A DNA stretch of 63,927 nucleotides, filler included, from Choristocarpus tenellus KU-1152 (lineage: Eukaryota; Protista; Phaeophyceae), in the NCBI GenBank assembly GCA_964200185.2. It is 13 parts of 13 records of this genome, joined end to end, with 100 filler letters (N's around TTAATTAATTAA, not from the genome) between each part and the next. Parts side by side here need not be neighbours in the genome. Positions count along the whole stretch, not along the records: positions 37,769 to 43,336 come from CAXNAD020010397.1; positions 43,437 to 46,942 come from CAXNAD020019564.1; 11 more parts are not named here. The stretch is one strand, 5' to 3'. The translations under genes and the position numbers were made by a program. Below are positions 37,769 through 43,507 of this stretch, one piece after another. The notes below the pieces were generated by a model. It saw only the letters and a list, made by a program, of their open reading frames with translations, had not been told where the DNA came from and did not search any database. Each line of letters starts with the position of its first letter. Position 1 is the first letter of the stretch.

Positions 37769-37971
37769 GTTGCGATTTTGATGTGATTTTGGCTATCGTG
37801 TTTGTTAGGAAGTGTCAATATCCTTGTTCCGGCCAACTTTTTCAGAACGTAAAAATTTTACCTACTCCTAAACATTTTGGAGTCGGAAAATGTCATAAAA
37901 AAACCCATGGGAAGCCAAGCCCCAAATGGACAAACAGCGAAAAACTCGTACCCTCTAAGATACTTTCCCTC
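37769..37971. mobile_element. MITE family A, left end lost at linker
   Basis: Ends CTCGTACCCTCTAAGATACTTTCCCTC; central hairpin present. Confidence 0.88.
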
Positions 37972-39322
37972 TATACGCGTGTGATATGTTTATTTATGCT
38001 TCAACAAAATCATCTCATCCGGCCGTCCCTGCGCTGCTGCAGCAGTTACCACGCGTAAATACCTACAGAATTAGAGATCCGCTGCTGGCATACGATTCCT
38101 CTAGGACTCCATCCCCCGTCCCTTGTATCCACCTCCAACACAACTCCCATCCATTTATATACATACGTGCGCTACTACAACACGAACGGCACGAACATAG
38201 ATAAGGACATGGCTCCGAAGCGAGACCTGGTGATGTCCTGGATAGACTACTGGGTGGATACATACGGGCAGTTCATGCCTCACAAGTCCGCAATTGTGAT
38301 CTATGCCGCGAACAAAGAGGTAAGTTTTGCCCTTGGTTGTGGAGAGATTGGCCGCACCCTGTGTTGGAGTTAGTTGCAAACCGTGTGACCCAGCAGTACG
38401 TAGAAGAAGTGGATCGAAGGAGTATTTCGAGTGGTGGGTGTTACTACTTTGACTGGTCTGAGATTATGGTTTTAATAAATATGAAGATTCGTATGAAGCG
38501 CTATTTTTTTCGTTTGCTATGTCGAGACTACATTGATGATGATGATACTCTTCGTCGCTTTTGCGAAGGAAGGCACAATAACTGTTATTTCACCGTTGTG
38601 TACACCTACTCTGCGGCCCTGGGCCCGGTCTGACATTGGTAGGAAAAGTGTGTACTTCATATGTCTAAAGTGCTTCGCGATGATGATGATGATGATGGTA
38701 GATTCGCCTCCTTTACCGTTTCTGCAAACGGCGGCGAGGCCCGAACAGAATGACACTCTTGGCAGATTTACGAAGATCATTGTATTTGACCTTTCGTAAC
38801 GCACAATGTAAGCTTGCTTGATCCTGCCTTCCGTGTTCTCAGTCAAGTTATTGTTCAGCCCGCCTTCGAGAAATCTTGCAGCGGTGTTCTTCGAGTGTTC
38901 CTTCTCAATAACTCCTCACTTGCCCACACAACCAGCATTATTAATTAGGAGCTATACAAGGATTTTTGCAAAGAGGCAATACGGGTGTATCCTGATGACA
39001 CTTCCAAGCGGGTAAGCAAGGCGCACTTCCTCCGATTGCTCAGAGAGGATAGGCCCAACGTCAGGGTGAGGGTAGGAGGCGAATTTATTAAATGTGATAT
39101 ATGTGTCACGTTTAAAGAGAAGTGGCACGGTGCGCCTGGTGTAAAACCCACGAACGACTCCACCGTCCTCGAGTCCATCGACAAGGAGCTGTCAGACCAT
39201 CGAAAGGTAGGTGCCCAGCGTTAATTTTGCGACAAGCGTACAGTGGCAATATGTCGCCGTCATTGCCCTCCATTGGGAACAACATCTGTTACCTTTTGCG
39301 AATGAAGACTCCGATGCAGGTG

Positions 39323-39582
39323 GAGTGAAAGTATCTTAGAGGGTACGAGTTTTGCCCTGTTTGTCCATGTGGGGCTTGACTTCCCTTGGGTATTTTTTAT
39401 TACATTTTCTAACTCTGAAATGTTTTGGAGTAGGTAAAATGTATACATTATGATATGGTGTGTTTAGAACAAGGCTATTGTCACTTCCTAACAAACACAA
39501 TAGCCAAAATTATATCAAAATCGCAACATTGGAATATGGCCCTCAAATGGACGCAGGTCTACCCTCTAAGATACTTTGGCTC
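39323..39582. mobile_element. MITE family A in transposase intron 2
   Basis: GAGTGAAAGTATCTTAGAGGGTA ... TACCCTCTAAGATACTTTGGCTC; perfect 4-bp TSD GGTG. Confidence 0.93.
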
Positions 39583-40649
39583 GGTGCTTATAGCAGCAGC
39601 AGTAGCCTCACTCAGCGAAAAAATGTTTTGTTATTAGTTGCCCAAACACCTAGTATGATAGACTGCTTCCTGGTCGTCTACAACGGGCTGTGGGAGGGAC
39701 AGGTCATGTAGCGGTCTTCCAGCCCCGTACGTACGTACTTGCTACCATCCCAATAATGCTGTGTTTGCTTTGAATGCAGCAAGAAAAAACAAGACCAAAT
39801 ACAAACATTTTTTGTTACATACACTCGATTTGTGTTACTAACCTGATACGTGTTAACAAGTGGCCATTTTTTACGACTCCAAGCAGCAGGTTTATTTGAT
39901 TTACCTCCGTGATGTTGTTCTCCTCCATTCACCAGATTATCCAAGCTAATCGGCTGGTCATCGCCAACAGCGCCAGCAGCGCCATGCGGGCCAAAGCCGA
40001 TGGCAATCCTCTCGGCTTCGTGTTCATGTCCGTAGATGCGGCGAACCAGACATCACACGCCCTCCCAGCACTTTACCCACCTACCCACGGCGGTGACAGG
40101 TAACCACACGCACACATAGTCCATCTGTCAACAAATTGCAGCCGCACACAGAACAGAATAGACGACCCTGTTTTATTCTACGAATGAGTGCATGAACCAC
40201 AAGAAGTAACCGCCAAAACAGACGCACGTAATTCCACTACCTATTCCGTTCATCATGATGATGATGCACCGTAACACCTTTCTTTACACATTTTTTTGGT
40301 CCATGTCCTTCTTATCAGGGGCTACTCCGAGCGCCAGAAGATCATGGCCGCACATATCGAAGGCCAGTTCGCGGAGGTGTTCTTCACTCCTATCAATCTT
40401 GGAGGAGGTACGCATTGTGGGTTGTGGCTCAACAATCACACAACTGAATAGATGCTGGTTGCGCACGCACCACTTGATTTACCGTCGTGGCGAGTGGACC
40501 CGCCGTAGGTTAGATACCCAAGGACGACTACATCCTTACACGATTTGCCTACAGATACCGTAGGCCTGGTAATTAGTCGATTAACTGATGATGCGCTGTG
40601 CTCACCTGCCCTCGTACGCCTCTGCTTCAGAAGGGCAAGAGGAGCGTAA

Positions 40650-40908
40650 GACCCAAAGTATCTTATAGGGTAGAGCTGCGTCCATTTGTGGGCCAAAATC
40701 CAATGTTGTGATTTTGATGTAATTTTGGCTATGGTGTTTGTTAGGAAGTGTCAATATCTATGTTTCGGTTACACCTATTCATAACATAAACATTTTCCTA
40801 CTCCGAAACATTTCAGAGTAGGAAAATGTCATTAAAAAACCCTGTGGGACGCCAAGCCCCAAATGGACAAACAGGCCAAAACTCGTCCCCTTTAAGATAC
40901 TTTCACTC
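40650..40908. mobile_element. MITE family A in transposase intron 4
   Basis: GACCCAAAGTATCTTATAGGGTA ... TTTAAGATACTTTCACTC; perfect 4-bp TSD GTAA. Confidence 0.93.
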
Positions 40909-43507
40909 GTAAGAGCTAATCAAGGAGGAGGAAAACCCACAGACATGTATATCAGCCAGTCGGGTGTATGTGCTCTACATCGCAAAAACACATTCCATTA
41001 CCCCTCTTTTTAGCTCCAATTAAACAATGCATAAGTAAGCAGAGTACTATTTGCCAACTAACGACGGACATCATCGTTCGCGCAGGTTCTAACCTTGTCT
41101 GCATAACCGCCCACCTTGCCTTCTCAAGGCTTATCGACAAGTACCACAATAACCTCGATCACGCGGGGCATTGCATCATCAAACATGCGCATTGGCAGGT
41201 AAGAAAGTTTCATCTTGACACGACCTACTCAACACATACTCGCCGAATACCAGTCACCAAGTAACTAACTGCACGGTCTTTAGTTTTGGTTTGTGTGTTG
41301 CAACCTGCATATATGATGGCGGTGATGTAGAGGTTGCGCTCTAGCACTACTGGAAACGTACCCTGTTCCTCCACGAAACGTGGTGAAATGGGCTGACATA
41401 TCGGCCTCACGCCTATCCCTCCCTCGCTCCCAACTCCCCAAACTGACCAGGTCGACAACTGCGTCACAATTTCTTTCTCGGATATGCAGGGCTGTTGGTC
41501 GCGGCAAGTGTCATTCGTGTGGTCGAGATAAATTTTATGATGGTAGGGCACACACACATAAAAATCGATCAGATCTTCTCCAGGTAATTAAGGCAAGATA
41601 TATAAATGCAATAGCCACATGGTGTTTTTAGACGGACAGATACTGCCTTGAGGCTTGCAGTTCACGCTTGTTGCGTCTCTGGAAGATTTATGGTCATACA
41701 CTGCAATTGTTTGATTGACGTTTGATTTCCCCACAACAAAATTACACGATAAGAGCAGCTGCCAAACCTGTTTTGTAACCTACTCTCGAAACAAAACAAT
41801 AAAATGTACACATCACCCCTTTTTATATTTATACTTCCATATACATGCATCAGAGCATGTGCCAGCATATATATCTTGCTTCTCCACTTCGCTTCTTTCG
41901 CCCTCGCCTCAAAATTAACTTGCTTTCATTTCACCTTCAGGTTCTCACGTGGTATCAAAGGGAAGAACATATTCACAAGAACACAGCTGGGTGAAGAGCT
42001 GCAGGCCTCTTACACGGAGGTTCCAGTCTACTGCAAGACCCTACGGAACGAGGGAAACTTCAAGGGACTCCTTCGCGGTCACGTCAACCGTGTTCCCAAT
42101 ATCACGAGCTACAGGGCTTTTCGCGTTGAAAAAGGCGGTGATGGGCGGGTTAAGGTTAGCGTAAAGCAATACATGCACAGCACCGAATGGAGTGGGATAG
42201 GCGGAGATGTTGCTATCGACCCCAATAACCCTCCGCACGACCTCTTCATCGGCCACCCGCCTCGTATCCAAGATGCACCACCCTACCAGCTCGTTCCTGA
42301 AGACGTCATCCTGAAGGTGGAGCAGCGGTACCAGGCGTCACACGAGCGCCTCGCTGCTGCGTATCCACTGGGTAAGTCGATTTTTTCGTGAGGGGAGTTG
42401 ATGGCTAATTCTGGTATTCGGTTGCAGCCGAAAAAATCTGGTGCAACTTCTGTACGAGGCAGCCTTTACAGCCTTTACAAAAACAATTTTGAAAAATATT
42501 CCATTCTCATGCGTAGTGATCGTCGCATGTTGCAATAAAAAGTACTATAGATTACCCCCGATAAATGCTTTGAGAGTACCGGTCTTGTACTCAACAGACA
42601 CGAATCCGACGAAATCTACACCCTACCTCTCACTGCATGCTCCCCGAGCGCATCCGTGCAACCTCACACCTGGTTACAAAGTAACATTCATGCTTCCATA
42701 CCGTTGATGTTCTCATGCTCATGGATTCCACCTTCGCAGACGATGAAGCCATTCAGAGAGCGAAACACGAGCAAAGCGAGTCTATGCGGCTTCTCAAAAA
42801 GACAGGGGAACGAGAGTTCGACCTCCCAGTCCATTGGCTTCCCACCGATGACGATGACGCTGGAACTGGTACCAGCAACGTCGAAGACACCGACCAGGGC
42901 GAACGTTCGGGTGGAGGAGGTAATCTCGTCAGCGGTGACAATAATCTCGGCGGGCTCGAGGAAACAGACTCTTCCTCATCGGACAGTGACAAGGAAGAAC
43001 CTGGCTTCCGTCGACAGGGTTGGCCTCGTGCCACCTTGACATTGGCAAACGATGGAAACTTCGTCTCCGTACAGGAAGGCAGGTTTGCCTTTTTTGTGGC
43101 AACGGAGGGGCAGCTCTTGGTCGGCAAGATCCTAGCGGAGCGCGTTGGCGACGACGGGGAGCGTGGGGCGGATCTTCACTGGCTTCGGCCGATCAGTGAC
43201 CACACACGTGACAACACCGCATTTATGACCCTTGATAAGTACGGGAAAAGTAGTTTTGTAGAAGGCTACATACACGCTGGTCATGGATCCGGGCGAACTG
43301 GGAAACAGAAGCGGGTCAAAGACGTAAGCTGGGAACNNNNNNNNNNNNNNNNNNNNNNNNNNNNNNNNNNNNNNNNNNNNTTAATTAATTAANNNNNNNN
43401 NNNNNNNNNNNNNNNNNNNNNNNNNNNNNNNNNNNNTTAATTCACCCCCCCCACAAAAAAAAAAAAAAAAAAAAAAAAAACGAAAAAAAAAAAAATACCC
43501 CAAAAAG

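Follow-up and report, generated by a model that had tools for sequence, protein, structure and literature searches.

A defective copy of a probable multi-copy, intron-containing Sola1-type DNA transposon in the brown alga Choristocarpus tenellus

The Sola superfamily was reportedly described by Bao, Jurka and Kapitonov in 2009 as a group of DDD transposons (with three catalytic Asp residues) that generate a 4-bp target site duplication (TSD). Most described Sola elements are 4–7 kb long. In the classification of Majorek et al. (2014), as cited in PMC5751038, Sola1 corresponds to class E.10 of the RNase H-like proteins. Giant DNA transposons of the brown alga Ectocarpus, including Sola-1, have been reported together with intron-containing genes curated from RNA-seq data (PMC12477816). 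One of them, Sola1-1_Ec32, is 21,549 bp long, with AACCG..CGGTT termini, a 282-bp imperfect terminal inverted repeat (TIR) and a 4-bp TSD; its best BLASTP match is the Repbase entry Sola1-1_PPa, and two of its 1,989 copies are intact (PMC12477816). Here we analyze a 5.6-kb piece of DNA (positions 37769–43336, record CAXNAD020010397.1) from Choristocarpus tenellus KU-1152, which forms part of a window of 63,927 nucleotides joined from 13 records of the assembly GCA_964200185.2. The piece very probably comes from the interior of a cut-and-paste DNA transposon of the Sola1 type, a multi-copy element with introns; it represents a single copy, of which the 5' exon(s) and the 3' end are absent. The family itself is not new: Sola1-1_Ec32 belongs to it, and the studied copy is a defective member from a divergent subfamily, the second of Sola1 in brown algae. 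What is understood of Sola biology does not change, as both the family and its intron-bearing nature had already been published.

The coding potential of the piece is divided among eight segments of the + strand, each of which was translated and each of which has canonical AG|exon|GT borders; translation and homology searches were carried out exon by exon, and exon DNA was concatenated only for the calculation of base composition. Exon 1 (38201–38319) has an uncertain 5' border and contains an ATG at 38209. Exon 2 (38949–39206; 86 codons, phase 0/0) encodes a zinc-finger-like KCDIC...H motif, and exon 3 (39936–40099), which ends in phase 2, carries the first catalytic Asp (GAT, 40035–40037) within SVDAANQ. 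Exon 4 (40319–40407; 89 nt) ends in phase 1, and exon 5 (41086–41198; 113 nt) encodes GSNLVC...HWQ. Exon 6 (41451–41583) carries the second Asp (GAC, 41454–41456) and the third (GAT, 41567–41569, in HIKID), exon 7 (41941–42371) encodes the C-terminal half of the DUF7869 domain, and exon 8 (42740–43336), cut by the edge of the piece, encodes an FDL..WLP block, an acidic tract and a beta-rich C-terminal domain (FAFF..LVGKI..LHWLRP..SWE). A first-pass annotation had read this region as eight GC- and CpG-rich, GT/AG-bounded segments that splice with consistent phases and without an internal stop. All the borders and all the motifs listed there are present (as KCDIC, SVDAANQ, GSNL, VDNC and FMMVGHTHIKIDQIFS), and the exons are indeed GC-rich (53.9% vs 44–45% in introns); the CpG enrichment is weak (observed/expected 0.96 vs 0.83–0.87), and the claim of an uninterrupted frame fails in exon 6, as described below. 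Outside exon 6, the piece shows no further stop and no defective splice site.

The DUF7869 assignment made from the sequence was borne out by the profile search. Exon 6 matches the Pfam family DUF7869 (PF25273) with an E-value of 3e-12 (47 bits, profile positions 70–112), and exon 7 matches it with an E-value of 5.8e-6 (26.5 bits, profile positions 115–191), which on its own is just above the curated gathering threshold of 26 bits. The two exons cover adjoining parts of a single domain on either side of the predicted intron 6, and such matches go far beyond what would be expected by chance. PF25273 is a domain of unknown function with no stated link to transposition, and most of the Atlas clusters in which it occurs are from arthropods and tardigrades. 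Exon 7 retrieved 64 relatives from 1.84 billion representatives in an exhaustive HMMER search, mostly exon-sized open reading frames (ORFs) of short contigs, with the longer P0015 and P0017 reading straight through the junctions of exons 6, 7 and 8. Word searches seeded with P0017 and P0065 yielded full-length relatives from Undaria pinnatifida (P0065, 850 aa), Pylaiella littoralis (P0066) and Ectocarpus sp. (P0069), all of which possess DUF7869; P0065, P0066, P0069 and the more distant P0070 match the profile with E-values of 1e-26 to 1e-37. In BLASTP comparisons (E-values referring to a database of six proteins) the exons of the studied copy are colinear and abutting on P0069 (exon 1, residues 180–213; exon 2, 215–304; exon 3, 306–358; exon 4, 362–388; exon 5, 391–413; exon 6, 429–467) and on P0065 (exon 7, 381–526; exon 8, 528–725). 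The H-I-x-I-D sequence around the third Asp occurs in the brown-algal relatives as HIKID, HTKID, HIKMD, HIEID, HIQID and HVAID; the suggestion that HIKID might mark an algal clade thus agrees with the relatives, where such variants are shared rather than peculiar to the studied copy, and H-I-x-I-D with a single conserved Asp is a feature of the clade.

The closest described system is Sola1-1_Ec32 itself. The 5-mers VGHTH and ENKNN each occur once among the curated Ectocarpus transposable element (TE) proteins, in both cases in Sola1-1_Ec32_tpase, and this protein is visibly of the same family, with PKRD..MP, (K/L)CxxC, MDGANQ, GYGER, GTNLV, VQVDNTVAENKNN, FMMVGHTHIQIDQIFS and RTLENLANFK. This match indirectly confirms the Sola/DUF7869 assignment and means that the family was already known in brown algae. 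The motif order common to the two is PKRD..MP, (K/L)CxxC, (V/M)D(A/G)ANQ, GYxER.K, G(S/T)NLV, VDN..ENKNN, FMMVGHTHIxIDQIFS and RTLxNxxNFK, and they also have in common a brown-algal host, an intron-containing gene and mostly defective copies. The subfamily of the studied copy is nevertheless divergent, its exon 7 showing 37–42% identity with the proteins of the Ec32 type (P0017, P0065 and P0066). Further differences are an additional intron (intron 5), DNC instead of DNT, and an exon 8 domain that is absent from the curated Ec32 protein model. The Ectocarpus element further includes an accessory ParB-methyltransferase gene, whereas the studied copy is known from the 5.6-kb fragment alone. Within the Sola superfamily at large, the comparable features are a DDD triad in which the third residue is Asp and not Glu, its codons being split between two frames in the studied copy, and the predicted RNase H-like order of strands and helices; the brown-algal elements differ in being giant and intron-rich, a comparison that was made via the published classification. 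Elements of the piggyBac type (e.g. piggyBat, 9c0f) likewise move by cut-and-paste, duplicate 4 bp of the target and have an RNase H-like core with a DDD triad, but neither in sequence nor in fold do they match significantly (piggyBat at rank 32, E-value 0.51), and piggyBac targets TTAA, whereas the TSD of the brown-algal Sola1 is merely biased to end in A.

Exon 6 of the studied copy is broken. VDNC lies in the frame of position 41451, which terminates with ..WSR* (TAA) after 26 codons, and GHTHIKIDQIFS lies in the frame of position 41450. The comparison was made with L002, a 4.6-kb metagenome contig containing a paralogue 75–87% identical to the studied copy: 13 nt are absent between 41465 and 41466 relative to L002, which reads GTC-TCCGAGAACAAGA-ACAATT, encoding V-SENK-NNF, and the exon is 133 nt long in the studied copy against 146 nt in L002. 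Six contigs of the sequencing run X2 part from the studied copy exactly after 41465, reading TCAGAGAACAAGAACAATTT and encoding an intact DNCVSENKN, and L004 contains KVDNCVSENKNNFF in a single frame, intact at the site of the lesion. The 13-nt deletion removes S-E-N-K from the DNCxSENKN motif, next to the second of the catalytic Asp residues, and the resulting frameshift leads to a stop, so that the studied copy cannot make the enzyme; the intact reading frame initially assumed for the gene is contradicted. All three Asp codons are still present, with the second and third in different frames; the triad is intact in L002, L004, P0065 and P0066. A cryptic mini-intron was considered as a possible rescue and rejected: the sole GT..AG pair (41463..41489) spans 27 nt, and its removal would give the wrong frame.

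Contigs from four sequencing runs of a single study were aligned to the studied piece; the runs contain 5–33% of its 31-mers, and the summed contig depths are not exact copy numbers. At 90–99% identity, 39,217 contigs of X1 and 28,054 contigs of X2 align to the piece, covering every bin, those of the introns as well, and a given variant site has as many as 46 distinct contigs. Since the contigs cover exons and introns alike, the whole intron-containing unit has been multiplied at the DNA level, which excludes both a lone host gene and a collection of retrocopies. The original proposal had foreseen many dispersed copies with terminal repeats if this were a transposon; the many divergent copies were found, and inverted-repeat searches in L001, L002, L003 and L005 returned only low-complexity sequences or local palindromes and no TIRs of the element. 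The eight exons of L002 correspond to those of the studied copy, with equal lengths of 111, 258, 164, 89 and 113 nt for the first five, slightly different lengths for exon 6 (as above) and exon 7 (437 vs 431 nt), and AG/GT borders throughout. Between the studied copy and L002 the ratio of non-synonymous to synonymous divergence (dN/dS) is 0.155 with a dS of 0.84 (424 codons, counted exon by exon). Because of this low ratio, selection for a functional protein would have acted during most of the divergence between the two, which is the pattern expected of active transposon lineages.

Spliced forms of the gene can be recognized in run X3, where the ratio of exon to intron depth is ~50–100:1 versus 3–7 in X1. 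A joint from 40096 to 40316, with GT..AG ends, removes intron 3; loose ends at 41585 read TCTCACGTGG.., i.e. exon 6 joined to exon 7; and a further joint spans intron 2 in a divergent copy. We infer that X3 behaves like an RNA or cDNA data set. The junctions that the first reading had hoped to see in transcripts are thus present for intron 3 and between exons 6 and 7, in a run whose library type is not on record. The positions of the introns are old. J2 (phase 0), J3 (phase 2), J4 (phase 1), J6 (phase 2) and J7 (phase 1) interrupt the same residue in the same phase in L003 (from Pylaiella) and in L005, and J4, J6 and probably J7 are found at the shared position and phase in L001, although the subfamilies of L001, L003 and L005 are only 35–45% identical to the studied copy in exon 7. 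Exons 5 and 6, on the other hand, form a single exon in these three loci, where one tblastn alignment spans GSNL..VDN..GHTH. On account of this fusion, intron 5 (41199–41450) is specific to the subfamily of the studied copy and L002, having been either gained there or lost elsewhere. With five positions conserved at such low identity and one intron specific to a subfamily, the introns are best regarded as old residents of the element, with signs of intron turnover inside the transposon.

The core is predicted to be RNase H-like at low confidence. An AlphaFold2 (AF2) model of residues 215–535 of P0065, built from a 13-row alignment, has the order b1-b2-b3-a1-b4-a2-b5 at low confidence (predicted local distance difference test score, pLDDT, 55; predicted template modelling score, pTM, 0.59), with D249 closing b1, D333 closing b4 and D375 opening the helix that follows b5, which are the places expected for the acidic residues of such a fold. 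Fold searches with this core gave a best Foldseek E-value of 0.028 and a best VIA-align Z-score of 6.4, all below the level of evidence; the sub-significant matches are mostly RNase H-like and include the herpesvirus terminase nuclease, the Argonaute PIWI domain, RuvC, Sleeping Beauty and piggyBat. The model of the exon 8 domain (pLDDT 53) was too poor for a fold search. A sequence search of the PDB with P0065 found no related solved structure, a scan of the JGI metagenomes with exon 7 found no relative, and the term 'DUF7869' occurred in none of the papers searched.

Three other explanations of these data deserve consideration. The studied copy could be an intact autonomous transposase gene, in which the 13-nt gap of exon 6 is an error of assembly or consensus. 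The stop-free state of all the other exons, the canonical splice sites and the dN/dS against L002 would fit this, and the runs contain at most 33% of the words of the studied copy, so that the deletion is unconfirmed in independent reads of this exact copy. However, the loss of 13 nt in non-repetitive coding DNA is atypical of sequencing error, and giant DNA transposons of brown algae often have pseudogenised transposase genes, with only two of the 1,989 copies of Sola1-1_Ec32 counted as intact (PMC12477816); we regard an intact gene as very unlikely. It is still less probable that the family is a DUF7869 nuclease or transposase outside Sola1, i.e. a superfamily of its own, placed in Sola1 by the Ectocarpus curators because of a weak BLASTP match. 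The comparison with Sola1, Sola2 and Sola3 of Repbase is by way of the published classification, no solved structure is related by sequence, and in one Atlas cluster of DUF7869 the DDE_Tnp_ISAZ013 domain is present in 11% of members; yet the curated entry has Sola1-1_PPa as its best BLASTP match together with the 4-bp TSD expected of Sola, and the DDD triad is found in a predicted RNase H-like order of secondary structures. The idea to which we give the least credence of all is that of a domesticated or recently lost host gene, single-copy and with a cellular function, derived from a Sola transposase. Host-style introns, strong purifying selection relative to L002 and the spliced forms in X3 are what such a gene might show. 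A domesticated gene would be expected in single or low copy, with an intact frame and outside a mobile context, whereas here tens of thousands of divergent contigs of X1 and X2 extend over exons and introns with dozens per variable site, the frame is broken within a catalytic motif, and in Ectocarpus this family exists as a mobile element bounded by TIRs, in 1,989 copies (PMC12477816).

Of the two alternatives left by the first-pass annotation, the intron-rich transposon lineage is accordingly favored by the multi-copy state with introns and by the intron positions conserved across deep subfamilies, and domestication is contradicted by the copy number and the broken frame. Several points nonetheless weigh against a Sola1-type transposon as we describe it. 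No TIR or TSD of the element was found within the studied piece or in L001–L005, so that the subfamily is only presumed to be mobile. It is the published classification (PMC12477816) that connects the family with Repbase Sola1, the structure models are of low confidence with fold matches below the noise level, and spliced joints in a run of unrecorded type could in principle come from processed DNA copies.

If the gene were intact, it would encode a transposase of ~850–900 residues, which we propose to consist of an N-terminal Cys-rich DNA-binding region encoded beyond the studied piece, a KCxxC..H zinc module, an RNase H-like DDD catalytic core (with the Asp residues of SVDAANQ, VDNC and GHTHIKID) and a conserved C-terminal beta-rich domain. 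Intact copies would have their primary transcript spliced by the host spliceosome at the conserved GT/AG introns, and the protein, by analogy with the Sola1 family, would bind long imperfect TIRs and then make 4-bp target duplications. The studied copy could not produce the enzyme and could be mobile only in trans, if at all. A bolder combination of ideas, which we consider unlikely, is that of a still-active, deeply diverged second brown-algal Sola1 lineage, in which intron 5 was newly gained since the subfamily split, the conserved C-terminal beta-rich domain absent from the published Ectocarpus model possibly provides chromatin-reader-like targeting, and the transposase mobilises a hyper-abundant 260-bp miniature inverted-repeat transposable element (MITE) with the same 4-bp target duplication.

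The gene model is incomplete at both ends, with an upstream exon absent and exon 8 running off the edge of the piece. The ATG at 38209 had been proposed as the start codon, which is probably wrong. The frame of exon 1 is open back to 38059, the homology with L002 extends upstream of the ATG, L002 reads GTC GGG where the studied copy reads GAC ATG, and a catAG|A acceptor candidate at 38199–38200 is common to both; for these reasons the ATG probably encodes an internal Met. The relatives have at least one more upstream exon, encoding a conserved Cys-rich N-terminal region (CCRxxC ... FGVS..LI) at L002:1–126, L003:8254–8583, L005:2422–2745 and L001:95–379. A tblastn search for this exon in the studied piece, which starts inside a MITE 240 nt upstream of exon 1, gave no match. 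The region upstream of exon 1 (37972–38200, + strand) probably represents the 3' portion of the intron downstream of the absent exon; it belongs to the repeated unit, as contigs of ~92% identity align to 37979–38226. At the 3' side the relatives extend ~40–130 residues past ..DVSWE.

Our analysis also points to a conserved C-terminal exon that the curated Sola1 protein of Ectocarpus does not include. In its curated form, the Sola1-1_Ec32 transposase ends with ..VAHVGGTFSFF (PMC12477816, supplementary file 2), which looks like a read-through of the splice donor after the equivalent of exon 7. The exon lacking in that model would comprise FDL..WLP, an acidic tract and FAFF..LVGKV..LHWYTP..SWE..IVATC..GGKKIP, judging from 42740–43336 of the studied piece, P0065:528–765, P0067 and P0068. 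ORF-based scans miss intron-rich transposases of this kind; exon segments spliced by eye recover them, although each frame needs to be checked.

Two of the more distant relatives have features of their own. P0070 (821 aa, from a 2,984-nt contig of the European Nucleotide Archive) is a distant (24% identity) and apparently intron-less DUF7869 protein with the same layout, comprising CxxC, DxxDN, DNCxRENKN, GHTHxxxD and a similar C-terminal block, and with HCIAD at the third Asp. Its intron-less state suggests that the intron-rich state is specific to the brown-algal lineage. The Sola1-like gene of L001, a contig of GCA_964200275.2, has an in-frame stop in its equivalent of exon 2, and at the 3' end of this contig (L001:8200–9099) short CATGGGGCCCCATGAG-like palindromes are repeated in a dense array.

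Three copies of the MITE, which is ~260 bp long with 23-nt TIRs (GAGTGAAAGTATCTTAGAGGGTA), were found in the piece by searching for repeats and for the TIR word. Copy 1 (37769–37971, + strand) is cut on its 5' side by the edge of the piece, its right TIR ending at 37971, and reaches a summed depth above 1e6 in X1. Copy 2 (39323–39582, - strand) lies in intron 2, with 23-nt TIRs and a 4-bp TSD, GGTG (39319–39322 and 39583–39586); its empty site is seen in other copies of the gene as a joint from 39312 to 39588. Copy 3 (40642–40908, + strand; left end approximate) lies in intron 4. The summed contig depth of the MITE is 20–40x that of the transposase gene, and its TSD has the length of that of Sola elements. 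Neither the other loci nor the text of the Ectocarpus TE library contain the TIR word.

Rfam and tRNA scans of the studied piece found nothing, and its minus-strand ORFs gave no matches to any family. In the comparison with X1, the studied copy has T or A at 116 sites where all other contigs of the family have C or G, versus 73 sites of the reverse kind; the former include 38255, 38304, 38996, 40355, 42100, 42208 and 42364, several of which are CpG in the relatives, and the excess has the signature of GC-to-AT decay. Short (GAT)n/(ATG)n microsatellites are present at 38528–38547, 38678–38697 and 40247–40266, in introns 1 and 3.

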